Positions 17,235 through 57,018 of a stretch of 64,000 nucleotides of DNA are shown here, piece after piece; within the stretch, counting starts at the first letter, position 1, and the number at the start of each line of letters is the position of its first letter. Under the pieces are notes generated by a model that was given only the letters and a program-made list of their open reading frames with translations, did not search any database and was not told the origin of the DNA. A program made the translations under genes and the position numbers. Source of the DNA: Mytilus californianus (lineage: Eukaryota); assembly GCF_021869535.1 (NCBI RefSeq), contig NW_026262734.1, positions 103,912,001 through 103,976,000 on the forward strand, written 5' to 3'.

Positions 17235-17330
17235 TTAAATAGAAGTCTTTAACACATTGTATCTCTTCAGTGACATTCTGATGGATCCTAGTTCTCTTTC
17301 CACCTGATCCAACTTTTCATCTACTCTCTC
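17235..17330 (-). CDS. MPHOSPH9: MPHOSPH9 terminal coding exon
   Basis: tttttttcag|GAG; ERVDEKLDQVERELGSIRMSLKRYNVLKTSI then TAA. Confidence 0.9.
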   Translation of the reverse strand, partial: ERVDEKLDQVERELGSIRMSLKRYNVLKTSI

Positions 17331-17397
17331 CTGAAAAAAATATTGAAATAAATAATTAACAAGTGGATTGACATTTTGGCCACTATGTCTCATATAG

Positions 17398-18485
17398 CTA
17401 GAGGCTCTGTGTCGCTCACCTTAGTCTATGTGCATATTCAACAAAGGACACTCTCCAACATTGTAGACGTGAATAGAATTCATGACAAAAAATCTCTGTT
17501 TTATTGATTTTGTATTGCTGATCATTTAGTCTGTTTAGTTTCTCTCTATCTTCTTTAGTTTTTGCTCAAAACACAAAAGAGGGTAAAAAAAAATCCTCAT
17601 TTAAGGGCAATCACTCCTATAAAGAGTGACAGTCTAACTATATAGGCAAAATTTGACTTGTTAGTAGATCTTGACTTGCTGGTCATTTTTGTGATTTAAA
17701 GTGTCTATTTATCTATTATAATTTTTTACATATAAGGCAAAACAGAAAAAAAATGTTGAAAATTGTCATTAAAGGGCAATAACTCCAATAAGGAGTCGTT
17801 GGATTATTTCCTCTATATTGTCTTAATTGTAGATCTTGTCTTGCTGATCATTTTTGCTTATTTAAGTTTCTATCTTTCTATTAAAATTTTTTAAGATATA
17901 AGGCAAAAACACAAAAAAATGGTAAAAATCATCATCTAAGGGCAATAACTCTGATAAGGAGTCAACTGACGATTTTGACAATGTCGACTTTTTGGTAGGA
18001 CTTGTCTTGCTGATCATTTTTGCAATTTGAAGTTTCTCTCTATCTATTATAGTTTTCAAGATAATAGGCAAAAATGAAAAAAAAAAAAAGGTAAAATTTG
18101 TCATTTAAGGGCAATAACTCCTATAAGAAGTTGTATGCCAGTTCTGACGTATATGGACAATTGGTAGAGCTCAACATTTTGAACATTTCTACTCCTCTCT
18201 TTCTCTATTTATCTCAGACTTTCTCTATTTATAACGGTTTTCAAAATAATAGACAAAACTTGCATTTTACTCCTTCATTTTATTTTTAGCCATGTAGGCC
18301 ATCTTGGTTGGCAGGCGTGGTCATCGGACAAATTCTTTTAACTAGTTACTCCAATGATGATTGTGGCCAAGTTTGGTTAAATTTGGCCCAGTAGTTTCAG
18401 AGGAGAAGAATTTTGTAAAAGTTAACAGACGACGGATGCCAAGTGATGAGAAAAGCTCACTTTGTCCTTTAGGCCAGGTGAGCTA
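17398..18485 (+). mobile_element. HINE family A, copy 2, in the last MPHOSPH9 intron
   Basis: Same termini as 1864-2893; aagggcaat[a/c]actc anchor recurs at about 168-bp spacing (about 17603, 17772, 17939, 18108). Confidence 0.75.
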
Positions 18486-19203
18486 AAAAGTGGCAAATCC
18501 TTAATGTTATACTTTTACCCTATATGGTCTAAATACTTTGTGTCTATTTGTTAATGTTAAATGTAGTTATTTTGGTTTAACATATTTGAAATGTTTCAGA
18601 TTTTATCATATCGGTCCCTGTTATAGCTGCATAAACGGTATGAGTATTGATCATTGTTAAAGGCCATTTGCTGACCTATAGATGCTTACATTCACATCAC
18701 TTAGACTATGGCGGATAATTTTCTAATTGGCAATCATACCACGTCTTTTCTTTATATGTAGTATGGGTTTTGCTCATTGTTGAAGAAGATACAGTGACCT
18801 GTAATTATTCCATCTTTGTTCTTTAGTATATGGGTTGTTGTCACTGGTAATCATATCTTTTTATTTTTACATCTTAGGGGGAAAAAAAGGATAATGCTTG
18901 TTAAAAATTTGTAACTCTTTCTTGAAGACCTTACAGGACAAATGAAGATGAAAAAATCCAGTAAAATTAGCTTTGGCTTGAAAGGACATGGAGTCATTGC
19001 AAATGCTAACAGATACCTAAAAACTGCAGTTGTTGCAGTGTATCAATACTTATATTAGGCATTGTTAGTCTTTCTCTGTGTGTGTACTCTTTGTAAATTC
19101 TCATTTTTAACTTAATATGTAGTGCCTTGAGCTCATTCCTTGCATTTACTCACCATGAAAAAACTTCATATAGTGACTCATACTAATACTTTGTATTTTA
19201 CAA

Positions 19204-19415
19204 TACTGTAAATTCAGAAATTATTGCTAGGTTTTAAGTAACGCGAATAATGCAATAAATGCAAGTATCGCAATAATAAGGACTCACATTTTGATATCTG
19301 ATACATATATATGTATGCAAATTTTTCAGAAATCTCAATAATTTACTTCACATTCTTGTCTATTCTTGAAAAATAGCAATAATAAATGAACGCAATACTT
19401 TCTGAATTTACAGTA
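19204..19415. mobile_element. MITE with TACTGTAAATTCAGAAATTATTGC TIRs
   Basis: Terminal inverted repeats; family copies at 44489-44703, 47001-47242, 60568-60761, 62596-62805 and a degenerate copy near 9288. Confidence 0.75.
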
Positions 19416-19460
19416 TTTATCTGCAGAAAACCTGATCATTAATTCATATTTTACAATTAC

Positions 19461-19514
19461 CTTTTCCTGTCTGCCTTTACCATGTAGAGGTATTCTGCTT
19501 AATGTCGACTCCAA
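19461..19514 (-). CDS. MPHOSPH9: MPHOSPH9 coding exon 15
   Basis: tttacttcag|TTG...AAG|gtaatt; LESTLSRIPLHGKGRQEK. Confidence 0.85.
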
Positions 19515-20224
19515 CTGAAGTAAAAACAAATCAACATTTATGATCAGGTCATAATTCCTAAGTTTGTTGTTCCTTAGTATCTTTTTTAAGATGATACACA
19601 AATTTCAAGAGCATTTCTTTTTAACATTATAAGAATGGAATTTTTAATTTGCCACATTAACAATTAACTACATGACTTATACTGTGAATTCATTATTATT
19701 CCTTGGGTACTAATTTTTGTGGATTAAGAGTGCAACAAAAGGCTTGTGTGCAGAATTTGTGAAACCATGAAATCCAAGTATTCATGAAAATATATTTTTT
19801 TTCTCAGTCCATGAAATTCAGTATTTTCCTGGAACTGGTAAATTCTGTCTTAACTTTATGGAGTTATTCAAAAATATATTAGGTGTTAAAAGAAAACTTA
19901 CTCAAATGGAACTGGAGTAAACAAAGCTGTTTCACTTGAGCAATATTGATTAGGTATAACTAAATTGAACTGACCAATTGCACAAAAAAATTGGTTAAAT
20001 AAAATGTTTAAATTTGGTGTAAAATAATTGTACCAAGATTTTCAAATATTTTTACTTTTATATAAAAATTTCTAACAAACGTGATGAAAAAAGGTAACAA
20101 GGAACTTGTAATAAATATCCAAAAGACTATAAGAAAAAAAAAATTGAATCAACCATAGTTTGGACACTTGTGAATTTTTGTGCATTTATTCTCATATTTT
20201 GTCCAAATTATACTAAAATCTTAC

Positions 20225-22196: not shown

Positions 22197-22810
22197 CATG
22201 ACTACCATTTAAAATCTTTTTGGATTTCTTGACTTTTGAACTCTGTGCACTTTTTGCTTGTAAACTTTTGTTTGATGGCTTGTTTTCATCTCTCTGTGGC
22301 TCACCGTCCCCAGGATGTCGTCTTGGAATAACACCATTTGATTTATTTTTGTCCGTACTTATATCAAACCTAGTTGGACTTGAATATTCATCTGGATTCA
22401 CTGATAACTTTGAAGGTGGCCTTTGACCCCTTGCAGAAGAGTTATTCAAAATACCATTACTATTATCCTGAGAACGTCTTGAATGTGTTGATTTTGTTTT
22501 CGGTGAACTTGATGGTGATTTTTTTCTCTGAATTTTGGGACTACTTCCAGGAGAAAAATCGCCATTTCTAGTTTGAGTCTGAATATCACTTCCGTAGAAT
22601 TTCTTCTTCAATTTAAATTTTGGAGGTTCGCTTGGACTTTGTCCAATTTGTCGCATCATGTCTCTGAGTCTGTATAGGTCCTGTTCCGCCCTCATGACAG
22701 GTGATACTTTGGAAGTGTCAATTTGATCAACACTACTCTCTAACACACTATCACCTAATTGTTCATATCCATTTGCACTGTTTCTTAATGGTGATTTTGA
22801 CCTGGAAGAG
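22197..22810 (-). CDS. MPHOSPH9: MPHOSPH9 coding exon 12 (Ser/Lys-rich)
   Basis: cttttgacag|C...CAT G|gtaagt; contains ORF 22144-22746 with SPVMRAEQDL and SSPTRFDI. Confidence 0.88.
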
Positions 22811-24706: not shown

Positions 24707-24928
24707 CTTTGAACAGACAAATCTCCTAGAGAACCATTCATTCTCTCCCTTTCTGACAAAGAGTTATCTCTCCTAGTATTTGACCTTGATCCTGCTTCAC
24801 TTCTTGGAGATTTAACTCCCCTTGGAGATTTGACACTGACTGTAGGTGTCTCTCTTTTTGGGGATGGCACATAATCTGATGATGGGGATTCAAAAGAATC
24901 ATGGAAACTCCCATGGAGAATAGAAGTG
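24707..24928 (-). CDS. MPHOSPH9: MPHOSPH9 coding exon 11
   Basis: ttgccttacag|C...AG|gtaatt; in frame with ORF 24703-24975. Confidence 0.82.
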
Positions 24929-25728
24929 CTGTAAGGCAAAATTTGTATCAGTAAGTTGAAATAATCAAATCTCAAATTTTCATTTTTGTCTCACTAGCGA
25001 CAATAATCAAAGAAGAGACATAAGTGTGATGCCTCAAGGAATGTTGTAAACAATTGTAAGTTTGTGATTAGCCTTGATAAGGTTTCACAAGCAAGATATA
25101 TCACTGTGTTAACAGTTTATGCGTAATATGAATAATTTTTTGCTTTGATAATGTAATAGTTATTCCAGTTAAATACATCTGGGGAAGTGAATGTTTCTCT
25201 AAGGTGTTCCCCACTAAAACATTATCATAAATACTTATAACAGAAAATGTTCATATATCATCATCAACATACTGATAATGAATTGTGTGTCCCTGCTTAA
25301 AACATATTCCCTTGGGGTAAACTTGAATATTTCTAACAACATTGTGCTTTATCTAAAAAGTTGGTGTTAATGTTCATATTAAGACATTACAGAGTAGTAA
25401 TTTGATCTGATTTTTTAATTCATTACATTCACTGGTTTCAGATTCACAAAATAGACTGCTAAATAAAATATAAATTCAAAGCGTTACCTGGCTTTGATTT
25501 TAATCTTGTACAAGGAACAGCTATATTTCCAACGATACTGTAATGAACTTTACTTGTCTTGTTACCTCCCTTTTTTCCTCGTACTTCTTGTTATTGTGAT
25601 GGTCTAAATTTTTTTTCAGACTAGGAATTGCATTATAAAAATATATTTGTATTTCTTGATAAAAATTGAAATGAATTTTCATACATGATACCTCAAGAAG
25701 ATATGAAAGCATTTATGACAGTACTCAC

Positions 25729-25809
25729 TTGCCAGTCTGCATTCTCCTATGTAAGTTGTCATTTTCTCTACATAATCTTTTATTTTCTAATTCCAACTTT
25801 GAAACAGTT
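25729..25809 (-). CDS. MPHOSPH9: MPHOSPH9 coding exon 10
   Basis: aattttcag|A...AA|gtgagt; (R)TVSKLELENKRLCRENDNLHRRMQTG. Confidence 0.85.
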
Positions 25810-26964
25810 CTGAAAATTATAATATATGATTTCTCAATCAAAGTAATACAACAAATGTTTTTTTTTCCATATACATGTATTGATCTCCTATCATCTACTA
25901 CTATTAATATCCAATCTCTTTAATATAAGTATATAATTTTCCTTGCAACTGGTCATTTCAGATTTGATCCTACCTTAGGTGTCACATGTGGAGCAGAATA
26001 TGCTTTCTCTTCGGGGGCACCTGCGATTACCCCGGTTTTTGGTGGGGTATATGTTGCTCAGACTTCAGTTTTCTATGTTGGGATCTGTATACTTTTGCTT
26101 GTGTTTTGGTTGTTTTTGTTTTCTGCTATGGCATTATCATTTCCTTTTTTTAACTTATGAGTTTGACTATCCCTTTCCTATCTTCTGCCTCTCATTTAAT
26201 AGGCTATTTATAAACATGCTAGGCAATCAAATCAATACTGCTCAAGTTAAATACCATGCAGGTGATTTCTAATTACGTTTGCAGACAAAGTTTATTAAGT
26301 GTTTAACAAAAGTTGCAGATTGTGTATTCAAATATTGGTAAGTATAGCCTTTTCCTAAAGTGTACATATCTATATAAGCTGAGCAAGTCTAAGGCGTCTA
26401 AAATTGAGACAAAATACCTGCATGAATTTGCTGCTGAAAAAGCCATTAAAATTTTGAAATATTGTAAAAATATTCATAAAATTGTACACATGTTTTTTTA
26501 AACAAACAGACATGGCAAAGAAGTTACATTCTTTTTACCATGGAATTTTTTTCTGTGTATTATACACAGATTCTTTAATACAGTTTTATCTAGTATGATT
26601 TTAATGTTAGCTATATTTTTGTCTTCCATTTAGAAAAGTGCTTTTTCTGAGCTGATTTTTATTGTACATGTTTCTTTGAAAATTTGTTGTATCACAGACC
26701 ACAATAATAGGAATTACCAAACATCTTTATCTGGTAAGGGTTTTGAGTGTCTTTCTGTGATTTTTCTTTTTGACCCTTCCCCCCCCCCCCCCCCCCTCCT
26801 TGATATCTTCTTCCCTTTTATAGAGCTTGACAAAAATTGTATGTCCGTCCACTAGTCTGTCAATTAAGATTGTAAACTAGGTCTATTTTTTTTTTTTTTG
26901 TATTGTTGGCTTGCTGTCACATTGATTTTAACCATCCTCTCCATTTATTCATACAAATAAATAC

Positions 26965-27029
26965 CTCTTAAGTTCCACTATTTCTGTTCTTGCATCATAC
27001 AACTTGTTTTCTGTATTTGATAAAGATTC
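26965..27029 (-). CDS. MPHOSPH9: MPHOSPH9 coding exon 9
   Basis: ttctttcacag|GAA...AG|gtattt; ESLSNTENKLYDARTEIVELK(R). Confidence 0.87.
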
Positions 27030-27897
27030 CTGTGAAAGAAAAATCAAGCAACTTGTTTAAATTAGTGAACATTTATGTGTAACGAAGTTGAGGTATAAGA
27101 AGTTTCAGAAAATTTAAGTTGGTTTTGGACATGAAAATAAATGTCTCCCCACTTTCTTAGGAGAGTAACTTGGAAAGACATTACATGCTGAGCACAAATT
27201 TTAAAATCTAATACTGTGAATATTGTGAAGTATTTATGCCGTTTATCCCATCATAATGATTTTGTATACATTTTATTTTGAGATGGACAGACAAACAGAC
27301 AGAGTCAGACATATAAACTGTGTACAGGAGAACAAGAATTCACTTTATTTATACAAAATTATTTAGATATAATTGAATATATGATTATTTGAGACTATGA
27401 CACATATATAAGAGGCTTGTGTATTTATATGATTGTCCTTGTCTTATCATCAGAGCATTTAAATATTTGTTTTTTAGTCGCCCATGACCAAGATGACAAA
27501 AGGGACCATTTCTAAAATTTGATCTTAGCGCAGTCGTGAATTTGCATTGGTGGTTTATACAACTGCCTTCCTCACTAGTCAGGCAATAGGCCTTATCGCT
27601 ATTTGAGAATCTGCAATACTTGACCTAAGATTTTCAGAAACTTAAACTATAGATGTCAAACAACAATCACGTTTTTTGTATGACATCAGACATTTTCACT
27701 TGCGATGACAATTTTTTTTTTACAATGGCAGACTAATAGCGATAAAGTGTATAAAGTTAATTCATTTAAATCAAATCAATTAAAATCGATGATCACACAC
27801 TACTCGTTTAGATTATTATTTGGTTAGATATTTACAGAATACAGCTGATTGTTTTAGTTGTGTTCCCTTTCCCCTGATTATTTCCCGCAGTTATTAC

Positions 27898-27945
27898 CTT
27901 TGTCAATTGTTGTTCCCTTTCAGCAGCTTCACACTTGTCTGAAAT
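27898..27945 (-). CDS. MPHOSPH9: MPHOSPH9 coding exon 8
   Basis: ttcttcttatttaag|ATT...AAG|gtaata; ISDKCEAAEREQQLTK. Confidence 0.75.
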
Positions 27946-28789
27946 CTTAAATAAGAAGAAAATATCAAATGTTTCAAGATATATATTATTATATACAGCT
28001 TGTACCTATATCATTAACTTGATAATTTAATTGTGCTCAAAAATACTCTTTTCATAGACATGTATAATAAATATACTTGTTCTCCAATTGGTTTATATAG
28101 GAATCAAATGGTTGATAGGAAAAGATTCTCAAATTTTCAATTTTATCATTCAATCAGAAATTAACAACATTCAATTACAAAACAAATTTTGTTGTCATAA
28201 AGCTTTTTACAAATTACTTTGGTATAGAGCCAATAGATCTATATCTTTTATAAGAATGGAAATATCATTTCCTCCTGTACAAAAACAAAGTAAAAGACAT
28301 TGACCTGCAGATGTGTTTTTGCTCTTTGAGCTGTTGGGTTGCTGCCTCAATGATGTATACATAAGGTAACTTTTATTTATAAATATATCTGATATGTGTT
28401 TTCAGACTCTTATTTGTATTGATAATAATAGTTTATCGTTGGTCATCTCAACGAGATTGCTTTTCTCGCTTGAGCCGGTACGGTGAATGACCAACGATAA
28501 TCTGTTTATCGCTATTTTACCTATGACGACATTGTTAATTTCATTGACAACAGCATGTGCGCCCTTAGTTTCTAGCAATAATTTTTCAAATCACTCTACT
28601 GTGCTGAGAAAGGAAATTATCAGTAAGATAAAAGGAAAATTTCGAAAAATAGCTATAAAACTATTTTACATAGCACAAACATCAGGTTGATTATTCTTTT
28701 ATCTAGCATGCAATAATTTCAAATAAGTTGGATACTTTTGCCCAGTTTAATTATCAATAACCTCTAGAAAAATGTAATCACTACGCTGC

Positions 28790-29085
28790 TCAGACTACAT
28801 TTGTTTGCACCTGTCCTAATTCAGGAACCTGATGTTCAGTGGTTGTTGTTTGTTGATGTGGTTCATAAGTGTTTCTCGTTTTTTATATAGATTAGACCGT
28901 TGGTTTTCCTGTTTGAATGGTTTTACACTTGTCATTTTTGGGGCCCTTTATAGCTTGCTGTTCGGTGTGAGCCAAGGCTCCGTGTCGAAGGCCGTACTTT
29001 GACCTATAATGGTTTACTTTTACAAATTGTGACTTGGATGGAGAGTTGTCTCAATGGCACTCATACCACATCTTCTTATATCTAT
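28790..29085 (-). repeat. Young copy of the agatataagaagatgtgg repeat abutting a splice donor
   Basis: Reverse complement of 479-745 with few mismatches. Confidence 0.8.
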
Positions 29086-29089
29086 TTAC

Positions 29090-29143
29090 CTTGTGTAAAA
29101 CACCTCTTTCTCTCTGGATCTGGTCAGTTAGCTCCTGATTAGT
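29090..29143 (-). CDS. MPHOSPH9: MPHOSPH9 coding exon 7
   Basis: ttcacactttag|ACT...AAG|gtaaat; TNQELTDQIQRERGVLHK. Confidence 0.8.
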
Positions 29144-29712
29144 CTAAAGTGTGAAAAAAACGAAATATTGTATGAAACTGCATTATATTACAGTCCCTTC
29201 AATTTCTAATTAAAACATTCCATTTTAAATGATTTCCAGTTTACCAAGAAAATTTGTTTTTGATTTCCGGATGTATGTTTCAATGACAAATAAACGGAAA
29301 AAATAAAACTTAATAAAAAACACTGTGGAAAAACGGGAAAAACTCATGAAATATAAAAGTGATTACTTGGTAAATTGTAGAGTAAATTATTGACATTATT
29401 CCTAGGGAAAATTTGTTTCAGTTTACATTTAAAAGCTGAATCCCAATTGAATTAGAATATTATATCATAATTTCATAATCAAAATGAATGAATGCTATGT
29501 TTCTTCTTCAAGGTAAGGTATCAAATTAAAATTGAATGTAATTGGTTTCGTGTGAAAACTTTGTGTAGTGTCGGGCAACATCAGAACCATCTGATATTTT
29601 CTTTTTTTTTTCAATACTGTTCTCTTTTCTTTACATAAATCCTAGTCCTCCAGCCTTCTATATTCTGTAAAAAGTATGACAAATTAACAATTTTTAATTC
29701 TACTGTACTGAC

Positions 29713-44703: not shown

Positions 44704-44833
44704 CCTTACTAGAAAATGAATGTTGGAGACATTTTCTACCGTCAACAAGTTGAATGCAAAAAATATGATAAAAGGCAAAGAATATTTTATTGTTTTATCT
44801 TGATACAGCTTGTAACATAGTGTGACATAATTA

Positions 44834-45090
44834 TTGATTGATTTATTGATTGGTGTTCAACTCCACTTTCAGCACTTCGAGCTATTTCGTGGCAGTCAAG
44901 TTTTATTGGTGGAGGAAGCAGAAACCCAGAGAGATCAACTGACCTTCGGAAGGAAAACTGACAATCCTAGATAATTAAGATTGGATTCAAACACACCTAC
45001 CACGTGTGGGATTTGAACTCACAACCTCAGTGTTGATAGACTAGTGACACAGTAGTTCGACTTCTTAGACCACTCAGCCATCAAGGCCCC
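44834..45090 (-). mobile_element. tRNA-derived SINE (V-domain-like)
   Basis: Reverse complement of the SINE at 59841-60096; ends in a (caat)n tail. Confidence 0.75.
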
Positions 45091-45106
45091 TTTGACATCA
45101 TTATAT

Positions 45107-45245
45107 AAATAACACATAGCTGAGAGGATGATAGAGCAGATTGTTACCCCGAGAAAACATTGTCAACTGAGGCGAAGCCAAGGTTGACAATGTCTTTTCG
45201 AGGGGTAACAATCTGCTCTATCACCCTCTCAGCTATGTGTTATTT
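45107..45245. mobile_element. 139-bp fold-back MITE
   Basis: aaataacacatagctgagagg..gttacccc / ggggtaac..cctctcagctatgtgttattt, nearly perfect arms of about 60 bp. Confidence 0.8.
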
Positions 45246-47000
45246 GATTTATTATCAATGATTATACTGAATGTTCTGTTATTACTGTCTATCAAATTTT
45301 AAATTCAAAGTTATAAACTATGACGTCTTGTACATAACAATCATATGTATTTATTAAAGTGACACTTGAGCAACCGTCTCCGTAAAGGGTAATAGAGTAT
45401 TTGCCATGGGATAGAGTAAATTGTTTCCCTGGTATTGACCAATCAAAATCTGGCATTTTGACATGAAGTTTAATAATACAAAATATGTAAGTTATCATGC
45501 TTTAAAGATATTTTGGTCTTAAATTAAAATGTTACAAGCATTATTCAAAATGTACATGTATCTAAACATTCCAGTGATTGTAATACACCATTTTTTCATT
45601 AAAACAGGAGATTTGTCTAGGCATAATGCAAGTTGGAGCTTGCTAATGAGTATGGGAAAATGTCTGCTCATTATAGATAGTATTTTAAAAGGTGAATTTT
45701 CATGAATGCCATGATGCAAATGTTTTACCATTAAAATTTTGATCGAATGTGATTATGGACTTTTACAGTTTGCTGAAATTTCAAACAGAATACAATTTAA
45801 ATATTATGCAAGATTGTATGGCCATTGGTCAGAGACCACACATATAGCCAGAGAGGTTTTGATGTTCGGAGGACCTCTCACCCTGAAAACAAAAATTTAC
45901 TAAGTAAAGTTGAAATTTAGATTGAAGTTGGGCTATTAAAGACAGAGTGTCATGGCCCCTAATTAACCCCCTCAGAGACATCATGGCTATGGTCTGGAGA
46001 CTAAACAGTTCATACATAAACAACAAATCCTTACTAAAATACAATGTACGAATACCCACACTTTTCTTGTGATGGTTCGGAAATGACAATAACTTGCTAG
46101 TAAACTGCCTTAATCATGTTTATCAATCAATTTCATTCCAATTCAACATGTTCAATGATCTAATTCACTTTAACCATCAATTTCTAATTAATGAATGTAA
46201 ATCATGTTGATTTCACAGTATCCAAATTCCGGTTAGGAAAGATCAATAACAAAATGTTGTCTTGCAAATGAACTTTTAGATGAAGAAAAAGTTCAAGGTC
46301 AAATCTAAAATAAACCTCAAGATACATATTTGTTATTTAGTTTTTGAACATGTTGAATGGCTACACATTCCTTGTAATAATTAAAAAGATTTATTAAATC
46401 ATTTTCTCAGTTTCATGTAATTAGAGAGATTTTTTTAATCGAGAGTACTTACACATGTCATGCATGTACATGTATGACAATATTTTAGAAAAAAAGTAAT
46501 AGTTAGTAAAATTTAATTATCTGCCAGTATTAAACTAAAAATGTAAATGTTTGTGCATTATTCATCCCATCTATATACATGATATATGTATAAAGCAATA
46601 AACCAAAAAGTGTGATAAATCAGGTTAGCAGTAAACACCGGATCTATATTCACGTAAAGGTCATGAGTTGAGGAGTGCGTCATTAAAAATGCATCTGCCT
46701 CAGGGTTTTACCTAGCACCTACATCATGTACATTTGAACATATATCGTTTGATAGTCCTAATACATTTTTACATGGAACTTCTTTAGAATTAATGAATGG
46801 TCATCGTTATTGATCATTTGAACTATTTTCAGATTTTGTTGTAATAAATTTGAAAGTGTAATTAACCTTAGTTTTGCAGTATTTACTAAAAATCATGACT
46901 GAATTTGAAGATTGAAAAATGTGTTGCTTTAACGTTTAAGGTCTGCTCTGATTTGTGATAAAAGAGAGTGACATGGTCTGAGATACATGTAGATTTTAGA

Positions 47001-47242
47001 TACTTTAAATTCAGAAATTATTGCGAGGTTTTTATTAATTTGAGTAATCATGGTAATGCAACTTGGTGATTATCGCAATATAAATAACAAATGAATAAGA
47101 ACTCGCATTCTGAAATCTGATACATATATCTGTATGCAGATTTTCCTGAAATCGCAATAATGGAACTCACATTTTGTCCATTCTACATGTTCTACAAAAA
47201 TTGCCATAATAAATGCACGCAATAATTTCTGAATTTACAGTA
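47001..47242. mobile_element. MITE (TACTGTAAATTCAG TIR family)
   Basis: TIRs at both ends; internal part resembles 19204-19415 and 60568-60761. Confidence 0.75.
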
Positions 47243-49571
47243 CATGAGAGTTGATAGTCTTATGAGATAAACAGAAAGTAGTCTCTTGGGTAAAGATCTC
47301 TTTCAGCATGTCAAGAGTGTAAAGGTGGTTTTAATCCTTAAGTGAGACTTATGTTTGGGAAATGCATGTATATATAGCCTAGAACAAATTTTAAGTGCAA
47401 ATGATACAGTAGCAAGGGCAGTTGATAATGTGTCCAAATTTCACGTGTTGTATGTGCAATCATGGCAATGTTGCTTATATTCATGATACATGTATTAGCA
47501 ACCAAAATTCACAGAAAAATCACTAATGCCATCAGTCATGTGTCAGTTACATGAATTTGAAAGTATATGCAAATGAAAACAAACATGTTGTATTTAAGCA
47601 ATTGAAATTTACTGCAAACTCAAACATTTTTATGAATAAGTAACACCGGTAAACCCAATGTCAATCAGCATAAATAGCGTCATTGAAAAATCAGTTCTTA
47701 CTGTGAAATAATAACATATAAGCATTGTGATGTAAGAAATGTACAGGAAAATGCAAGAATTTGAAAGTCATCTATACATTTATATGGGTTGGGACCTTTT
47801 TACAGGTATCAATCTGCAGTGATAAAAAACTGAAATATGTATTTCACCATAATGAATGATGTGGCGCAAACATTCATATAAAGGGGAACATTTTTCCCTC
47901 TTCAGGGCATACCATACAGTTTGATCCCACAGTGATCTTTTTTAAGAAAAATTTGCATTATATATAAGCTTTTTTACACCCTGTCAATTCAAATATATGT
48001 AATAAAATATATACCTTCATGTGTACTTTTAGAGATAAATTGGGTCGAAATTTGGAATACACATGTACCTTATTTGCACAAGTATGCCCTTAATTTGTTC
48101 TACAATTCTTTGGAAATAATTAATTTTTATTAACATCATAATTTCAAATAAAAACAGCAATTTTTGTGGTATATATTTAGTAAAATTAAAAACATTTCAA
48201 TCGCTGACTTTCTCATAAAAATTGGTATAAATAATCTTCATCTATAATCAAGTCAAATGTCATTTTAACAGCACTCATTTTCAAGCTAATGATTAAAATG
48301 AGTAGAAAAATGCATCTTTTCCCAATATGTCACAGTTTGGCGTTGTAAAACAATAACATAATATGTTGGCGACATCATTACCTCCACTGTAACTGTATCT
48401 TATGCCCTTAAGACCATACATGTAGTTTAAATGAGAACTGAATACAAAGATAAAGACTCCAAAAATCCTACTTTTTGAAGGCTTTTAACTTTCACCATGA
48501 AGATATTTCAGTCATGGTCTTTTCATTATGCTTTTGGGGTAAAATGTCGTCATTTACCTGAATGTTTGCGCCATGATAGACAGCAAACATCTTGAAATCC
48601 AAATTTTTTATCTTTATCACTGATATCTATTTTGGGGTATAATTGTAACAGGATTGATTCCCTTAGTCATGTTAGTACACGTAGTAGATACTTAGCCAAC
48701 CGTAAGCGGTTGAGCTAGGAAAATACTTCTTTAGCTCTGTGAGTCGGTTAAAGCACTGCCTTGTAACACAGAGATCCCAGAGGAGACCATGTGATTGTGT
48801 AGTGAACATCATGCTCTCTGGTTACATTTGGTGTCCAACGATTTAAAAACCCAGTGGTTAGAGGATTTCTAGCCAGGGTATGTGTTGTTTGAGTCATAAT
48901 GGTATGATGACTCTTGAGGTGGTTGAAGTGTGACAGGATTGCTTTCCTTAGTACACATAGTAGATACTTAGCCAGACGTAAGTGGTTGAGCTACATTTTG
49001 TACAATGAACTAGGGAAGTACTTCTTTATCTCTGTCGGTAAAATAAAGTGCTGCCTAATGCAACACAGAGGTCCCAGGTTCGAGTCCCAGAGGAGATCAT
49101 GTGATTCTCTAATGAAAATCATGCTCTCCGGTTACATAATACCCATAAACAGTTCTGCCAACTTTTAATAATGCAAATGCGTGAGATTTGGCCAAAATCG
49201 TAAAGATCAAAGAGGAAAATGCCGCCAAATAAGCATGAAAATGCGTGAGTCTCACGCTCAATGCGTGAGACTTGGCAGCCCTGCATAAATGAGGATAGAA
49301 TCCATTTATTAGGATCTTACCCAAACTATACAACAGATACAGTTTTTAAAGTCTGCCTAACATCTAGATATTGCACAACAATTAGAGTCCATTGAGAACA
49401 AAACTTTAGAAACAAAAGAGATTAATTTAGGAAAGCGTAACAGCAAAAAATTAAAATAGCCTTTCAAGATGTAATAATTATTAAATTGACTACATGCAAT
49501 GGACAACATGGACAAAATCCAAAATACAAAACACATGACATAACATTGAACACAACATTAAGTGCACTTAC

Positions 49572-49960
49572 CATGTAATATCGTATAATGAAACAATGTA
49601 TATAACAGGACCAAAATTAAAAAAAATTGCAGTATTTAACTGACTTAAATCACAAACATAAAAATTTAAAGTTCAGGTCAAAACTTGCGTTTGAAGAGGC
49701 GCGTTAACCGTTATTTTTCACAACAAATATTCATGAACAGCCATACCTACAGAATGGAAAAGGATTTTTGTCACGTGCAGATCAAGTGTTGTTGATAACT
49801 AATTGACAAAATAGTACAAATGATATCATTTTGTGGTTTGTAATCCGTTTTCGTTATCAAAACAAATAATAAACTCGCTTCTAATTCTACTAACAATCAA
49901 GGTTAGACAAACGCTTGTAACAGATTAGACAGGTGCTGCTCGCTGATTCCCACAAAATCT
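49572..49960. promoter_or_regulatory. Candidate bidirectional promoter / first non-coding exons of MPHOSPH9 and MTRFR
   Basis: Unique sequence with raised CpG between the divergent genes; strong minus-strand donor ATG|gtaagt at 49572/49571; TTTGAA next to GGCGCG at 49690-49703; CACGTG at about 49771. Confidence 0.35.
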
Positions 49961-50691
49961 CATGAAATATTAATTTTTCCATCTGTTACAGTTTTATCCA
50001 ATGTCTGATTTCTTTTTATTAAGACCCCATTTTCTTGAGGGTAAATTAAAGCACACATATTGATTGGTATTCAATAAATCAACCTTGGAAGACCAGAAAA
50101 AAAATATTACATTGTGACAAGGGAGATAATTATAAAAAAAATAGAGACACAACAATATAGGTATAGATTGGTGTTGATAAAATGAAAAAAAAGAAGATGT
50201 GATATGATTGCCAATGAAACAACTCTCCACCAGAAACCAAATGATGTTAAAGTTAGCAACTAGTCTAGTATAGGTCACTGTACTGTGTACAGCTCAACAT
50301 TAGACAACAAGGATCAAAACCCAGCCTAGTCCAAATAATTATGACGTCTTGAAAGGCGTCAAAGCAAAAACATAAAATAGTCTTTCAAGGTGTCATAATT
50401 ATTTGGACCAAACCTGGCCATATCCCGAAGCAAGCTGAATCAGGGTCAATTCGCCCAAAATCGTGTTCAGTGGCGGATCCAGAGGGGGGCGTAGAGGGCG
50501 TACGCCCCCCTTTGCTTGAACTTTTTTTTTTTTTTTTGTAAAATTATTAATCAGACTAGACTTAGTGAACTTTGCCATTTCCCGGCAGTGTATTTAATTT
50601 TTATGCGTCAATTCTTAACTTATAAAGATATTTTTCGCTCGTATTTACTGTAATATATTATTGATTATGTTGAAGTCATGTGATTCGCTAC

Positions 50692-52025
50692 CAGGCGCGT
50701 AGCTGCCTTTACGCCAAAAATCATTTGCTTGCACATTATTTTCACAAAAAAAATATTCTGAAATTGAATTACGAATGAGTAGTAAGACAGGTCAACCGGG
50801 CTAACTATCTAGCTGACACTCCAAGTCAGTATTGGAAGCGAGCCTTGTATTTCTCCTTTTTTGACTATTTCATTGAAGAACTCAGAGGACGTTTACTGGA
50901 TAACTCTGAACCTTTTACCTGCATGTTTGGAATCTTTGACAGCAGAGTGTATAGACAAACTATACGAAACATTTAGACACGACTTGACGGACAATCAAGG
51001 AACATACAACTCTGAGGTAAAGAGATGGCAGAGACGCTGGTCGGGTCCAGATGTTATAGAGAAGCCCAAATCTCTGATGTCGTCTCTAGCAGTGACTAAT
51101 AAGGAACTATATCCTTCAATATTTGAAATCGTGTCAATTCTATAGTTACAATGCCAGTAACTTCATCAACTACTGAATGGTCATTTAGTGCATAACGGCG
51201 ACCAAAAACTTATCTCCGTTCAACCATGGTACAGGACGGACTATCTTCGTTGGCGCTCATGCATGTTCACAGAGAAATGAATATCGACACCGAGAGAGCT
51301 CTGCAATCATTTGCCTTGGCAAAAAATAGATGTATGGACTTTGGATATTAACTATACTATAAGTCTTACATGCAGTATTAACATTTAATAATAAAGGCTC
51401 AATACATGCAATAACCTTGAACACATCTTAGATTTATATCCCTCACTTATAAGTCAAGACTTAAAAGTCGCCGTTTGATTTCGTATTTCCATTGTCCGTT
51501 CGTCTAAAAGACTATTGATTCACCTTGGGTATCTGTGTCCCAAGTGACCTTCTACCGTTGTCGTAGAAATCCCACCCTCGATTCGAAAATGACCGTAGTG
51601 AGAAACGCTACGGTCAGGTGTCTTGCAAGAAGCAGGACCTGCTCACCCTTTCGGAACACTGGAGGTCGCCACATTTTTTTTCAGGGTTCGTGTTTTTTAA
51701 CTGTATTTAGTTTTCAATATTGAATGTTTTTGTTAGTTCTTTTGTGTCTTATCTGTTCCCGGGTTGGTCATGTGTCCATTGATTGCCCTTCTATTGATAA
51801 ACGCCTCGGAGGACTTGTCGACTGATCTTGCCGTTTCATAAAATTTATTTTATTTTTGAAAACAACCATGTTATTAAGGAGTAATGTGAATTTCATGGCA
51901 TACCTGGAAAATGACAGAAAAATGAAAATTTTCTGCATAAAAAGGTCCCAAAAATTTTTCGCCTCCCTCCGATCGGCGATACAAGTCTTATGCTTGCACT
52001 TTATTTTAGGCCAGCTACGCCCCTG
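50692..52025 (+). mobile_element. Nested hAT element with 14-bp TIRs and 5-bp TSD
   Basis: CAGGCGCGTAGCTG / CAGCTACGCCCCTG (13 of 14 match); GCTAC at 50687-50691 and 52026-52030. Confidence 0.78.
50780..51351 (+). pseudogene. Degraded hAT transposase C-terminus (dimerization domain)
   Basis: RQVNRANYLADTPSQYWKRALY..SEVKRWQRRW..LYPSIFEI..MPVTSSTTEWSFSA*RRPKTYLRSTMVQDGLSSLALMHVHRE, with frameshifts and a stop. Confidence 0.85.
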
Positions 52026-53865
52026 GCTACGGTGGAGTTGATCAGTACATCGAAAAAACGACACTCAGTCATGCAATTTGAAATTCAAATTACAGTAACA
52101 CATTGCTTAGGCGGAAGATGACAAGCATGACGCCTTCAAAGCGACAAAGGATTGAGCAAGAACGTATTGACTTCTATTTCACAATTCCACTCAACAGAAA
52201 GTAATACTCTATTACACTCTCATGAAAAAAAAAGTTCCAAAGCAATATTATTCACCTACGAAAATATGTGTAACCCCACACGCCCCAGCCAATTAATAAC
52301 ATTGCTGAATAATGATCCCCAGTCAGTAAGCTCTAGATAGATTTAAAGTCTAAGGTACGGACCATTTGATTTGATAGGGCAGTCTGAGATATTTTAGAGA
52401 AAAAATTTTGACCCTGGTTTTTGCCTTAAACAAAAATTCTGGCCGTATCTGTATTGAAAACAATTATCGTGTCCCCTTTTTTGAAATAAGAAAAAAAAGA
52501 AATCCAACAAAATTATTCAGCATTAAATGAAAATGGTGAATAAAAAACAGGCGTAATTTTTTTGGGGGATTTGCATGTAAATCCCATATCTGACAGGAAT
52601 GTCTGTTTCGCCGAACTGATACACTGAATACTTTTTTCAAGGCCCAACTGCAACCTGCCTGCTGGGTGTGGCCTTTATGTCTCCATTTGTCGACCGTCAT
52701 TCACAACTTCGTTGTCATTTGATTTTCAGACTCATTCGTAGCCTTTGGTTGATTTGGAACCCCTCACTTCCCTTGTTGGGTGAAACATTTCAACCAAACA
52801 ATTGGATAAAAATTGCTTGTTTGTCTTTGTTCGTGTCGATCGTATTATAAACTTCATTGAATAGCCGTATATCATGTTTACAACAAGAAATCTGTGAGGT
52901 TATTCTTATTAACCATACAACAAACGAGAATTTTCCATATGTCCATTTTTTACTGACAAATCCCACATCAAATATATTAGTACATAACTTTGGATCCATT
53001 CAATCATTTTATAATAGACAATTAATGGGGAGAATGCGGCATCAAAAATGTCCAACCCTAGCTTACACTTTAACTATAAAATATACATGCCCCACGTCAG
53101 GAATCGTTAAAAATGTGCATTTTACACTTATTTTATGTTTTTTAGCCCAAAAAAGGTAAGAAAAAATTTTACATACTACGCCCCCCCTTTCCAAAATCCT
53201 GGATCCGCCCCTGACGTTCTCTCCAATTCATGTTCGCCCACTTTCATTTTCGCACCCTTTTTATTGGTTATATGTTGAATACTTTTTTAATCTAGTTTTA
53301 GTCAGTGACAGTGTATTGCTATAAATTAGTTTTTTTTTATTGTTTCATGACAGTAGACAGTGCAGATAACAATGTAAATTTAATTCGTTGTTTTAGAAAC
53401 ATTGATAAGAATTCGCCGTTTCAGAATTTAATGCATTCTGGGTTATATTTTCAAAAGCGTACACCAAAACGTTGTAATTGATCAAAAACGTTATAAACAA
53501 TGGAAATTCTACCAATAACGTAATGTTATTTTTATTTTGGTGTACGAACAATAATATTACCCATATAGAGTCCTTTAGATTCTGAAAAGGCGAATAAGCA
53601 TCCAAAATTCACAGAAAAAAACTCACCTCATAAAAAAGGTTACATGGATTTGAAAGACAAAGTATTTGCAAGGGAAAACCATCATGATTTAGATTTAAGA
53701 ACTCAAAATCTACTGTTGGGGCACAAACTTGGAGAAAAATGAAGACGTTTTACTTTTCTATCATCAATAAATTAGTATCTAACAGTAATTCGTACAGCGC
53801 TTTAATGTACAGTGGAATATCTGTACAACAAGTCAATGTTGCATTAAGAAAACTCTACAAGGTAA

Positions 53866-54150
53866 TGGCCTGGTCAAACAAATGACTTCAATATTTGTAT
53901 TTGCTGCTTCTCCACTTAGCATGTAGCATTTAGGCGTAAGAGTAAAGACTGGTGGGCATGGAGACCGAATAATCTGTCCCGGTAGGATGACATGTTTTAC
54001 TACAGACATGTCTTTATACCTTGTGAATAAGCTTGTTAAAAATCCTGCTCAGGGCGACTGTCTAGTACAAAGCAGGATTCATATTTACATCATATTAACA
54101 TTTTCTTGTTTTTAAAATGCATTTAATTTTCCACTGGACAATAAACAGCC
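53866..54150 (+). mobile_element. Degenerate tRNA-derived SINE (family with gtatttgctgcttctcc core)
   Basis: Shares core and tail with 57972-58305. Confidence 0.6.
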
Positions 54151-54588
54151 ACCCATCATCATAATCCTGTACATGAATATATGCTGTAAAATACATGTGG
54201 AGAGCTACCATATAACTTGAGTCCAGCCATATTGAGATTATAATATTATTTTTTCTTTTTCATTAGGATGTTGTATTGATAATATCAACAGCACTGTGAG
54301 TATTTTACACCTTTTCTACTGCATCAATTATCAGAAGAACTTTCACAAAATAACTTTTGTTATGAACTTATGACAGTGAAATTTCTGATATATCCACAAG
54401 TAAATTGAATGTTTGACAATGATTCAGAAGTTTAACACATAGAAAGTGTGACTCTCTTTACTGTACAAACTACATGAGTAAAGAAGAACTTCTGCCCGTT
54501 AAGATGGTACTGTTCACCTCTTGTAGAATATATGTATGTCTGATGATTTGCAAAAATATTGAATGCTGATGTTTCAGAATTGAAAAAA

Positions 54589-54978
54589 ATGTCATTATTA
54601 TCAGAATTTTGTGTACGATTGTTCAGAAGTGTAACCAACTATAGTCGCTTGACATATAAACTAACTTCTTCTCATACCGTAAGAAATTATAATTCGAACT
54701 TATGGATGACTAACAGAATTAAGTTTTATTCACAACTCTGTGGACCAGTTACTAAGAATCTTGAAAAAAGTTTAACAAACATTAAGTTCCTGGCTTGTGA
54801 AAGTCAATTTTATCAGACAAGAAGATTGATCTCGCGAAAACAATACAAGTTTCCAGATCTATTGGAAAGTGATTTACAAGAACAGTTTGTTAGAGGTGGA
54901 GGACCCGGGGGTCAAGCAGTGGCAAAGACAAATAACTGTTGTGTGCTGAAACATTTACCTACTGGAATTGTTGTAAGG
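54589..54978 (+). CDS. MTRFR: MTRFR coding exon 1 (presequence and GGQ domain)
   Basis: Acceptor gtttcag at 54577, aaaaATG at 54589, donor AGG|gtaagt. Confidence 0.9.
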
Positions 54979-55104
54979 GTAAGTTAGTTGTCTTTTCTTT
55001 TTTTTTTAATTGTTAGGTTACTGTCTCTTTGGTGCATCCATGAAATGTTAAGCAAACAAGGATCAATGCATCTTCATACCATGGAACATTACGCACACAA
55101 AAAT

Positions 55105-55422
55105 CAATCAATCTTAACAATCTTGCTACCATGTATAATTTATCAAGCAACAACCAATCTATCTTAACATGCTTAATACCATGTGACATTAAGCAGTCAA
55201 CAACCAATCTATCTTAACATGCTTAATACCATGTGACATAATCACATTAAGCAGTCAACAACCAATCTATCTTAACATGCTTAATACCATGTGACATTAA
55301 GCAGTCAACAACCAATCTATCTGAACATGCTTAATACCATGTGACATTAAGCAGTCAACAACCAATCTATCTGAACATGCTTTAATACCATGTGACATTA
55401 AGCAGTAAACAGTCAATCAATC
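55105..55422. repeat. 50-bp minisatellite, about 6 copies, in the MTRFR intron
   Basis: Unit cttaacatgcttaataccatgtgacattaagcagtcaacaaccaatctat at 55163, 55213, 55271 (8-bp insertion), 55321 and 55371. Confidence 0.9.
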
Positions 55423-55762
55423 TTCATACCATGAATATGTTAAACTTAAAATTAAAACTGTACAAGTACATATTTTATTCATAAAATTATTTTTATGCTA
55501 ATTTTTAGGTTTGAAAGTACAAGTACATATTTTATTCATAAAACTATTTTTATGCTAATTTTTAGATTTGAAAAGAGATGCTAATCATACTTACATGCAT
55601 TGCACTTACTCATTAGGAATTTATCACATAGAAATTGTTTAAACTGTTTTATCGGCAATTTGTACATTTTTCGTTTGATCTTACTGCCTAATATTTTTAA
55701 TATCAACAAAAAAAAACATGCAGTTTAAACAAATGACTGATAAAAAGAATAATGGCATTTTA

Positions 55763-56060
55763 TTTTTATGCCCCATTTATGGGCATTATAAATGTTTTTC
55801 GGTCTGTGCGTCCGTTCATCCGTCTGTCTGTTCGTCCGTCCGTCAGTCCGTCTGTCCTGCTTCAGGTTAAAGTTTTTGGTTAAAGTTTTTGATGAAGTTG
55901 AAGTCCAATCAACATGAAACTTAGTACACATGTTCCCTATGATATGATCTTTCTAATTTTAATGCCAAATTAGAGTTTTGACCCCAATTTCATGGTCCAC
56001 TGAACATAGAAAATGATAGTGCAAGTGGGGCATCCGTGTACATTGGACACATTCTTGTTT
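55763..56060 (+). mobile_element. HINE family B, copy 2
   Basis: Near-identical to 11572-11839. Confidence 0.8.
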
Positions 56061-56796
56061 GATACTGACTTCATCGTCTCGAATATCAGCTTGCCCTAGT
56101 GGTCTTACTTGCTCTTCTTGCTGATAAAGTCAGTATCAAAATAGAAAATGCCATTATTCTATATGTATTACTTTCAGTGCTGTCAATACTGACTTGTTTG
56201 TATTATGATATTTATAACAGTTTCTTTATAATTTTTTGCCAATTTAAATTTTCCGTTAATTGATTATTTTTTTTTTAATTAAGGTGTGGTTTACATGTTT
56301 TCAGTTCTTCGTTGGTATAAATTCTGTTGTGGCATCTTGAAAAAAGATGCATATAAAAATAAGAAGATATGGTATGATTACTAATGAGACAACTCTCCAC
56401 CAGAAATAGAAGATGTAGACAGCTCTCACACAAGCAGAAAACCCTAACTGTAAAATATAAGGGCATACACCACAGGCACAGGGACACATTCCATTCTACT
56501 GCATCCACACAGCACAAACAACATGGATGATGACATATCGAAGGCTGAACACACATTAACAGAACGTTAAAATTCTTAAAATGTCTTGTATTTCTACAAC
56601 TATCGAGTCTGATTATATATGTCGCTACTCACAACAATCAAATTCTTTTTTTAATACTCAGTATGCCTCATGTTTTAAAATTTGAAAACTGTTAAGTGGA
56701 GGAATATAGTGTCTCACTTGATGCAGTGGTACAATCTATAAATATGTCAACATTATTTTTACAATTTATTGAATTTTTTATTGAACTTTTTGGCAG

Positions 56797-57018
56797 AGCC
56801 ATGAAACCAGATCTTTGGAACAAAATAGAAAAATAGCAAGGAAGAAGATGCAGGAAGAAGTAGACCATCATATACATGGAGAAAATAGTTTTAGATCTCA
56901 GGAAGTACAGGAGGGATTAGAGAATAGACTGGCAAAAAGACAGAGGAATAGAAAAAGACTGGAAAGAAAAAAAGCTTTAAAAGAAAAACTGGATTCTTTG
57001 GATGGCCATGAAGAATAA
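56797..57018 (+). CDS. MTRFR: MTRFR coding exon 2
   Basis: Acceptor aactttttggcag; SHETRSLEQNRKIARKKMQEEVDHHIHGENS...GHEE then TAA; AATAAA at 57034. Confidence 0.92.
   Translation, partial: SHETRSLEQNRKIARKKMQEEVDHHIHGENSFRSQEVQEGLENRLAKRQRNRKRLERKKALKEKLDSLDGHEE

Follow-up and report, generated by a model that had tools for sequence, protein, structure and literature searches.

A divergent gene pair was identified in a window of 64,000 nucleotides of Mytilus californianus DNA, in which the predicted mussel orthologues of MPHOSPH9 (minus strand) and MTRFR/C12orf65 (plus strand) are neighbours, placed 5'-to-5' with no gene between them. That the two genes are orthologues and that their linkage is ancient can be stated with high confidence, and it is likely that the fuller reading also holds, namely that these mussel orthologues form a conserved ancestral microsyntenic pair (CAMP) for which survival through promoter-proximal constraint is the most likely explanation. 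The exons and the spacer are listed in Table 1.

Table 1. Features of the MPHOSPH9-MTRFR locus, in window coordinates
Feature	Position	Strand	Details
MTRFR exon 1	54463..54978	+	5' UTR from ~54463-54483; ATG at 54589; CDS 54589-54978 (130 codons); gtaagt donor directly 3' of 54978
MTRFR exon 2	56797..57018	+	SHETRS...basic K/R tail; stop 57016-57018
Spacer, MPHOSPH9 to MTRFR	41172..54462		coding starts 13.4 kb apart
MPHOSPH9 large 5' coding exon	38406..41171	-	~920 aa, acidic; ATG at 41165
MPHOSPH9 exon, conserved block 1	35453..36106	-	WMQMFKTLEEKHQLDL...HKEAL, SWREIY, PRAGVYSSPMP; 98% identity to P0004
MPHOSPH9 exon (approximate)	32232..32453	-	tblastn match
MPHOSPH9 exon, most conserved motif of the family, LREKHAKHMADLREYYEKEL	31520..31759	-	P0004 mapping
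Seven short MPHOSPH9 coiled-coil exons (approximate)	24709..30751	-	P0004 mapping; 30701-30751, 29710-29874, 29084-29143, 27898-27954, 26964-27038, ~25728-25811, 24709-24924
MPHOSPH9 exon, blocks SPVMRAEQDLYRLRD, KKKFYGS, TRFDI	22198..22791	-	P0004 mapping
Four 3' MPHOSPH9 exons (approximate)	21288-21410, 20222-20311, ~19440-19514, 17238-17333	-	P0004 mapping

In vertebrates, MPHOSPH9 is a centriolar protein that binds CEP97-CP110 and controls both the TTBK2-dependent removal of CP110-CEP97 and ciliogenesis. The mussel gene is predicted to comprise about 17 coding exons specifying 1830 aa, with the first coding exon ending at ~41171 and the stop codon at 17235-17237. Its exons were searched one by one, and a congener protein, P0004 of Mytilus galloprovincialis (1832 aa), served as a proxy for the whole spliced product; about 17 pieces of this protein matched in collinear order between 41171 and 17238, nearly all of them with 77-98% identity. 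The large 5' coding exon includes 42-nt tandem repeats (40836-41076), and just before it come a polypyrimidine tract and a cag acceptor (~41172), so that at least one more 5' exon should lie upstream. The 'ML' start exon of M. galloprovincialis, sought by pattern between the two genes, was not found. Used as the query of a word search, the large acidic exon retrieved mytilid relatives only, and Pfam searches of the exons returned nothing but coiled-coil noise below threshold, which was discarded. MPHOSPH9 is fast-evolving and has no Pfam domain or model, and its bivalve orthologues carry RefSeq labels such as 'split ends-like', 'trichohyalin-like', and 'SRRM2-like'.

The 3' exons encode a C-terminal motif (...LESTLSRIP.HGK...ERELGSIRMSLKRYNVLKTSI) that aligns with vertebrate MPHOSPH9. 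A profile built from 14 molluscan proteins matched named MPHOSPH9 proteins of amphioxus, lamprey, shark, lungfish, bird, and teleosts (1e-92 to 1e-39), including amphioxus at 1.7e-92, lamprey at 3e-61, and teleosts at ~1e-49; starfish was matched at 5e-67. When the molluscan and deuterostome alignments were compared by hhalign, the probability was 100% (E 3.8e-74) over 587 collinear columns. In the reverse direction, amphioxus MPHOSPH9 gave a single match in the whole mussel genome, at 31550-31750 of the window. A gene tree (FastTree only, with P0004 of M. galloprovincialis in place of the window's gene) split into Spiralia and Deuterostomia and matched the branching order of the species, each of which had one copy. 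Together, these comparisons make a solid sequence-based case for the minus-strand gene as the single-copy mussel orthologue of MPHOSPH9.

MTRFR, a GGQ release factor that acts independently of codons, rescues stalled mitoribosomes; it is mitochondrial where its function has been described, acting together with MTRES1 in peptidyl-tRNA hydrolysis on split large subunits. Exon 1 of the plus-strand mussel gene encodes the GGQ motif (GGGPGGQAV) and the N-terminal half of an RF-1 domain, and was matched by Pfam PF00472 (RF-1) with an E value of 6e-09, past the family cut-off. Its best PDB matches were mouse and human C12orf65 (4.6e-14 and 5.7e-13), while RF1 matched at only ~1e-3, i.e. roughly 1e10 weaker, and ICT1 was absent from the matches at E <= 1. 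RNA contigs covered this exon (54463-54623, 54483-54790, and 54595-54978), ending exactly at the donor at 54978 and placing the start near 54463-54483. The two-exon model gives a protein of 203 aa that is short, lacks codon-recognition domains and has a basic C-terminal tail (RLAKRQRNRKRLERKKALKEKL). An M. coruscus protein labelled 'COXPD7' (P0023, 202 aa) showed 87% identity across exon 1. Caecilian MTRFR matched both exons (54826-54981 and 56794-56994) and nothing else in the 1.65-Gb mussel genome, and the plus-strand gene can thus be identified, on solid grounds, as the predicted single-copy mussel orthologue of MTRFR/C12orf65. Both gene identities had been put forward in the preliminary description of this DNA, along with a check of orthology by reciprocal searches and a gene tree; they were borne out by the profile matches, hhalign result and tree for the one gene, and by the GGQ motif, PF00472, the best PDB match and the single caecilian locus for the other, and the orthology check gave single matches in the mussel genome for both genes and, for MPHOSPH9, a tree concordant with that of the species. 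The same description placed the outer ends of the pair at 17235 and 57018, which are the limits of the two stop codons (17235-17237 and 57016-57018), and its view that no intact gene lies between the divergent genes also stands, as the interval from 41.2 to 54.5 kb held no ORF longer than 100 aa, the eight longest spacer ORFs had no significant Pfam match, and no Rfam family was found there.

The arrangement is not peculiar to the mussel. In each of Patiria (starfish; 4.7 kb apart), Ptychodera (a hemichordate acorn worm; 1.8 kb), Lottia (limpet; 1.5 kb), and Liolophura (chiton; 4.6 kb), a minus-strand MTRFR sits immediately upstream of a plus-strand MPHOSPH9, as does an unannotated MTRFR in the nemertean Tubulanus (L008:5657-6197). 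The RF-1 exons beside MPHOSPH9 in Patiria, Ptychodera, Lottia, and Tubulanus had C12orf65 as best match (1e-11 to 1e-19), not RF1 or ICT1. Pair and orientation were identical in six species of four phyla, Mollusca (three classes), Nemertea, Echinodermata, and Hemichordata. The adjacency could in principle have arisen independently in mussel and human, but the only point in its favour is that the products have unrelated functions, and two specified genes would be adjacent and correctly oriented by chance with a probability of about 1e-5 per genome, whereas one arrangement, uninterrupted by other genes and constant in order and orientation, recurs throughout these six species; such convergence is effectively refuted by the cross-phylum survey and its probability is negligible. 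The presence of the divergent pair in both Spiralia and Deuterostomia argues by parsimony that the linkage would date at least to the protostome-deuterostome ancestor, a conclusion that is well supported and that favours the earlier suggestion of linkage since the bilaterian ancestor. The survey covered spiralians and non-tetrapod deuterostomes. Scoring of adjacency in intermediate lineages, as had been recommended, was thus positive for Lottia, Liolophura, Tubulanus, Patiria, and Ptychodera and negative for amphioxus, where no linkage was present within 10 kb in Branchiostoma lanceolatum; the same was true of a pipefish. The linkage is therefore not universal, and is dispensable. No MPHOSPH9 exon was found within 10 kb upstream of MTRFR in Dreissena, a flank that would miss a mussel-like spacing of 13.4 kb.

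We take human MPHOSPH9 and C12orf65 to be adjacent and head-to-head, and the order at 12q24.31 to be PITPNM2-MPHOSPH9-MTRFR(C12orf65)-CDK2AP1-SBNO1. Compared with this presumed order, the mussel is alike in that MPHOSPH9 and MTRFR adjoin and point apart, but differs in retaining the central pair only, with a 13-kb spacer full of repeats. Published cis-neighbour lists for human and pig are consistent with the make-up of this block (SBNO and PITPNM appear in the pig list). Mussel SBNO and PITPNM are on the same scaffold as MPHOSPH9, but 27 and 100 Mb distant, and CDK2AP and a NUDT9-like gene are on other scaffolds; only the central pair stayed tight, and all other tested neighbours have dispersed. 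The gene order in the pipefish is SBNO-CDK2AP-MPHOSPH9-PITPNM, and in starfish CDK2AP is tail-to-tail with MTRFR.

This dispersal bears on whether the pair has simply survived passively, as an ancestral arrangement without selection, its short ancestral spacer offering a small breakpoint target in slowly rearranging lineages. Molluscs, nemerteans, ambulacrarians, and vertebrates do have conservative genomes, the products of MPHOSPH9 and MTRFR are functionally unrelated, amphioxus and a pipefish have lost the pair without obvious harm, and a 13-kb repeat-filled spacer is tolerated in the mussel. Yet mussel CDK2AP, SBNO, PITPNM, and the NUDT9-like gene all moved away while the pair remained adjacent, its orientation is the same in six of six species, and randomised gene orders conserve almost no pairs in at least four lineages (Irimia et al. 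2012, Genome Res 22:2356, PMC3514665). Passive survival is regarded as a credible but unlikely account.

The same study described 595 CAMPs, such as HSPE1-HSPD1, and found 5'-5' orientation to be enriched among them (Irimia et al. 2012, PMC3514665). MPHOSPH9-MTRFR resembles these in pairing unrelated genes that are neighbours in four or more of the major animal lineages, with no gene between them in Mollusca (mussel, Lottia, Liolophura), Nemertea, Echinodermata, and Hemichordata, with 5'-5' orientation fully conserved and with short spacers in compact genomes. It differs from HSPE1-HSPD1, the products of which act together while those of MPHOSPH9 and MTRFR do not, and a bidirectional promoter is putative at most in the mussel pair. 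The pair fits the CAMP class sensu Irimia et al. 2012, and is a sound but ordinary member of it.

A bidirectional promoter would call for divergent start sites separated by less than 1 kb, with which may be compared the MTRFR start at 54463-54483 and the implied MPHOSPH9 5' exon upstream of the acceptor at ~41172. MRPL44 and MRPL57 (window 5910-6196) are also head-to-head, but their starts lie within ~0.1-1 kb of each other, as against 13.4 kb between the coding starts of MPHOSPH9 and MTRFR. Within the spacer, which contains MITE-like inverted repeats, the DNA from 41.2 to 49 kb was CpG-depleted, resembling gene bodies, and probably represents MPHOSPH9 intron 1. CpG o/e values of 0.73-0.93 were found over 49-54 kb, adjoining the MTRFR start, with the signal at 50-53.6 kb confounded by high-copy repeats, and CpG o/e also peaked at 5-6 kb, the MRPL44/MRPL57 promoter. 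The segment from 50.0 to 53.6 kb consists of high-copy repeats (word depth 1e3-3e5 versus ~40 in single-copy DNA), from which the RNA reads across it derive, so these are uninformative on the MPHOSPH9-MTRFR locus. The 0.85 kb upstream of the MTRFR start (53.6-54.46 kb) is single-copy, and no RNA or divergent transcript was detected there, at low depth. One or two minus-strand-derived RNA fragments mapped to 49.6-50.0 kb, too few to place a transcript. A motif scan of the spacers of six species (NRF1, GABP, YY1, Sp1, CRE, TCTCGCGAGA, X-box) revealed no common site, and X-box-like sites in the window were at chance level (4 found versus 2.6 expected). An enhancer deletion in human islets that reduced MPHOSPH9 but left C12orf65 unchanged also speaks against shared control. 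On the RNA, spacing, and CpG data, the shared promoter raised as a possibility in the preliminary description is no more than putative in the mussel.

The explanation we favour is that the pair was inherited 5'-to-5' from at least the protostome-deuterostome ancestor and that its two 5' ends may share or interleave promoter-proximal regulatory DNA. A breakpoint between them would therefore damage at least one gene, and the pair would survive. Where genomes are small, the spacer measures just 1.5-4.7 kb; in the mussel, the insertion of repeats, probably for the most part within MPHOSPH9 intron 1, has left the coding starts 13.4 kb from each other. Such a constraint is a reasonable, if tentative, proposal, with a probability approaching but short of even. 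Alternatively, the pair could be a regulatory block with bystander linkage, the enhancers or promoter of one gene being located within the other (MTRFR-proximal elements in MPHOSPH9 intron 1, for instance) and leaving the genes inseparable though not co-regulated. The upstream 5' exon and long first intron of MPHOSPH9, reaching towards MTRFR, would suit this, as would the situation in human islets, where a PITPNM2 enhancer linked by pcHi-C to MPHOSPH9, PITPNM2, and C12orf65 controls MPHOSPH9 alone, enhancer deletion having lowered MPHOSPH9 but not C12orf65. However, such blocks are typically built around developmental regulators, which neither of these genes is, the small-genome spacers are short, and no conserved non-coding element was identified in the spacers, making this improbable. 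True co-regulation from one bidirectional control region is a more doubtful reason still for the persistence of the linkage; if it were true, centriole and cilium assembly would be coupled to the quality control of mitochondrial translation in ciliated cells, with their high energy demand, an undescribed functional tie maintained over more than 550 million years.

Whatever its cause, the retention of MPHOSPH9-MTRFR is a verified cross-phylum example of unrelated divergent genes that have remained adjacent from the bilaterian ancestor onwards, their other neighbours having moved away. Pairs of this kind are already known by the hundred, and no new biological question is opened by this one. Of practical use, adjacency to MTRFR provides a positional marker for annotating MPHOSPH9 in invertebrates, and the survey itself brought to light the unannotated MTRFR of Tubulanus and a chiton gene model in which MTRFR is fused with NUDIX.

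The preliminary description's observation of a divergent gene pair, MPHOSPH9 on the minus strand and MTRFR (C12orf65) on the plus strand, was confirmed, and the orthology of both genes is supported by sequence comparison. For MTRFR, the closest solved structures to exon 1 were the mouse (4.6e-14) and human (5.7e-13) C12orf65/MTRFR proteins; in the same search bacterial RF1 reached only about 1e-3, and ICT1 was absent from the matches at E <= 1. In the reverse direction, a caecilian MTRFR searched against the mussel genome returned the two MTRFR exons as its sole matches, in agreement with the gene call originally made. The intron after ...GIVV(K/R) occupied an identical position in the MTRFR genes tested next to MPHOSPH9 in Patiria, Ptychodera, Lottia and Tubulanus. 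The MTRFR intron in the window carries a minisatellite (55072-55423, 50 bp x 6.5). Contigs from an RNA run spanned 54463-54978, ending precisely at the exon 1 donor, and one of 786 nt had about 400 nt extra, outside the compared genomic stretch, which are presumably exon 2 and the 3' UTR. Raw stranded RNA reads were consistent with plus-strand MTRFR RNA.

MPHOSPH9 is without a Pfam model and its bivalve relatives bear inconsistent database names ('MPHOSPH9', 'split ends-like', 'trichohyalin-like', 'SRRM2-like'), so its orthology was tested directly, with the exons of the window searched separately. The C-terminal regions of 14 molluscan proteins were aligned, and a profile search with this alignment across 1.84 billion representative sequences gave 137 matches at E <= 1e-10. 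By name, 29 of the 30 checked were MPHOSPH9, '-like' or uncharacterised invertebrate proteins, the sole exception being a flatworm entry auto-named CEP162, with a match confined to the C-terminal motif. Matches included amphioxus (1.7e-92), Patiria (5e-67), lamprey (3e-61), Diadema (8e-53) and teleosts (about 1e-49), as well as shark, lungfish, coelacanth, bird and caecilian. Profile-profile comparison of the molluscan and deuterostome alignments gave a probability of 100% (E 3.8e-74) over 587 collinear columns, from the LREKHA(K/R)H..DLR.YYE block to the C-terminal ...LGS(I/V)RM(S/T)LKR(Y/F).VL motif. Amphioxus MPHOSPH9 found a single match in the 1.65-Gb mussel genome, at 31550-31750 of the window (a stricter first-pass search), and a FastTree reconstruction of 25 species, in which the mussel gene was represented by the Mytilus galloprovincialis RefSeq protein (P0004), showed a clean Spiralia/Deuterostomia split, species-tree order and a single copy in each. 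The identity first proposed for the minus-strand gene is supported.

P0004 (1832 aa) aligned to the minus strand in about 17 collinear pieces, from 41171 to 17238, nearly all at 77-98% identity. Given the positions of the two stops (see table), the end coordinates assigned to the pair by the preliminary description are therefore the two stop codons. The large coding exon is immediately preceded by a pyrimidine tract and cag acceptor, and the first two residues of P0004 are encoded outside it, so a 5' exon lies further upstream; it was sought between the two genes and not found. The acidic N-terminal exon (38406-41171, about 920 aa) includes a tandem repeat of 42-nt (14-aa) units (40836-41076) and accounts for the length of mussel MPHOSPH9, about 1830 aa versus 1000-1300 aa in deuterostomes; beyond mytilids, conservation of this region is limited to short blocks. 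An intron contains a further minisatellite (33394-33919, 122 bp x 4.4).

Features of the window and of compared sequences (L handles denote sequences of the species named)
Feature	Source	Position	Strand	Remark
MPHOSPH9 stop	window	17235-17237	-	end of last coding exon
MPHOSPH9 largest ORF	window	38367-41165	-	932 aa; forms one gene with a series of shorter ORFs
MTRFR exon 1 ORF	window	54559-54987	+	GGGPGGQAV and RF-1 domain
MTRFR exon 1 coding part	window	54589-54978	+	ATG at 54589; gtaagt donor next
MTRFR exon 2	window	56797-57018	+	continues with SHETRSLEQNRKIARK; basic tail; stop 57016-57018
Minisatellite	window	12751-13398		40 bp x 16
Minisatellite	window	58689-59513		59 bp x 14
RF-1 gene	Patiria miniata (starfish)			4.7 kb upstream of MPHOSPH9; CDK2AP gene beyond, tail-to-tail
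RF-1 gene	Ptychodera flava (hemichordate)			1.8 kb upstream of MPHOSPH9
RF-1 gene	Lottia gigantea (limpet)			1.5 kb upstream of MPHOSPH9; then NUDT9-like NUDIX gene
MTRFR exons	Liolophura sinensis (chiton)	L011:3704-5000		in fused RF-1+NUDIX model, 4.6 kb upstream
MTRFR, two exons	Tubulanus polymorphus (nemertean)	L008:5657-6197	-	unannotated, found by tblastn; annotated upstream: NUDIX only
NUDT9-like/MTRFR stretches	Lottia; Liolophura; Tubulanus; Dreissena	L009:4619-8477; L011:1-5369; L008:3424-6197; L001:10001-20799
SBNO-CDK2AP-MPHOSPH9-PITPNM	Syngnathus scovelli (pipefish)	L010:1-15167

In human, MPHOSPH9 and C12orf65 are, as we take it, adjacent and head-to-head. Contigs encoding MPHOSPH9 orthologues were surveyed with 10-kb flanks, and in every positive species MTRFR (-) lay directly upstream of MPHOSPH9 (+). 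The RF-1 exons of Patiria, Ptychodera, Lottia and Tubulanus (4/4 tested) all had C12orf65 as best match (1e-11 to 1e-19), with RF1 and ICT1 far behind. In M. coruscus, the MPHOSPH9 and MTRFR proteins each came from a contig of 210,211 bp. The adjacent, divergent pair thus occurs in four phyla, on either side of the protostome-deuterostome split, which supports the ancient linkage that had been proposed. The amphioxus comparison suggested at the same time came out otherwise: in Branchiostoma lanceolatum another gene lies upstream of MPHOSPH9, and MTRFR was not within 10 kb. The pipefish gene order is without MTRFR at that place, and Dreissena keeps MTRFR-NUDIX with no MPHOSPH9 exon within 10 kb, a flank that would miss a mussel-like spacing of 13.4 kb. 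Two annotation faults were noted, MTRFR and NUDIX merged into one 514-aa model in the chiton (L011:1-5369, -) and MTRFR missing from the Tubulanus gene set.

MPHOSPH9-MTRFR falls within the class of conserved ancestral microsyntenic pairs as defined by Irimia et al. 2012 (PMC3514665). Human and pig papers name the two genes as cis neighbours, and full-text literature searches found no paper on conservation of the pair. It is a newly and well documented case of a known class, unless already present in published supplementary tables.

In the mussel, CDK2AP (scaffold C143, ~66.81 Mb) and the NUDT9-like gene (C79, around 9.2 Mb) are on different scaffolds from the pair, while SBNO (~76.70 Mb) and PITPNM (~3.92 Mb) share its scaffold, C154, at distances of 27 Mb and 100 Mb. 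Chromosome-level linkage of the 12q24.31 type is partly visible, local order being lost and MPHOSPH9-MTRFR alone still together. In Lottia, the chiton, the nemertean and Dreissena, MTRFR is followed immediately, on its own strand, by a NUDT9-like gene (Nudix_hydro + NUDIX), which makes NUDT9-like/MTRFR/MPHOSPH9 a three-gene block in spiralians. In the starfish, a THAP+CDK2AP gene is tail-to-tail with MTRFR (L005:1-5316), a layout matching the presumed human order CDK2AP1-MTRFR-MPHOSPH9.

No other intact gene had been seen between the pair, and this holds: the spacer (41172-54462) has no ORF > 100 aa, its eight longest ORFs gave nothing significant in Pfam, and an Rfam scan found no family. It carries MITE-like inverted repeats, and at 50.0-53.6 kb word depth in a DNA run was 1e3-3e5, versus about 40 in the flanks, so this block is a high-copy repeat. 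The block is transcribed from many copies, and a 94-aa ORF within it (50861-51145) has a tail like a hAT-type transposase C-terminus and no Pfam match.

A shared promoter is a natural idea for a 5'-5' pair with spacers of 1.5-4.7 kb, and for the mussel this mechanism remains a proposal. MTRFR RNA contigs begin at 54463-54483; none was placed in single-copy sequence at 53.6-54.46 kb, where read depth was low. In this low-GC window (~31%), CpG o/e is low at 41-49 kb (0.13-0.6), like gene bodies, and high at 49-54 kb (0.73-0.93), comparable values elsewhere being solely in isolated 1-kb windows at 5-6 kb (0.86), 23-24 kb (0.84) and 34-35 kb (0.92). This change suggests that 41-49 kb is MPHOSPH9 intron 1 and that MPHOSPH9 starts 1-5 kb from the MTRFR start, the CpG signal being confounded by repeats. 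No motif was common to the spacers of six species. Full co-regulation is unlikely, because deletion of an enhancer in human islets reduced MPHOSPH9 and left C12orf65 unaffected.

The Tubulanus spacer has a perfect RFX X-box (GTCACCATGGCAAC, L008:6364-6377) at its end nearest MTRFR; such a site is suggestive beside a ciliogenesis gene, but this is a single match not repeated in the other spacers. The CpG-rich windows at 23001-24000 and 34001-35000 lie in MPHOSPH9 introns, in an otherwise CpG-depleted gene body, and may represent recent insertions, or else regulatory elements or promoters internal to the gene. Elsewhere in the window, an 82-aa ORF (4603-4851, -) matches the C17orf113-type zinc finger (PF25431, E 6.8e-16); it probably belongs to a transposon-derived or domesticated gene.
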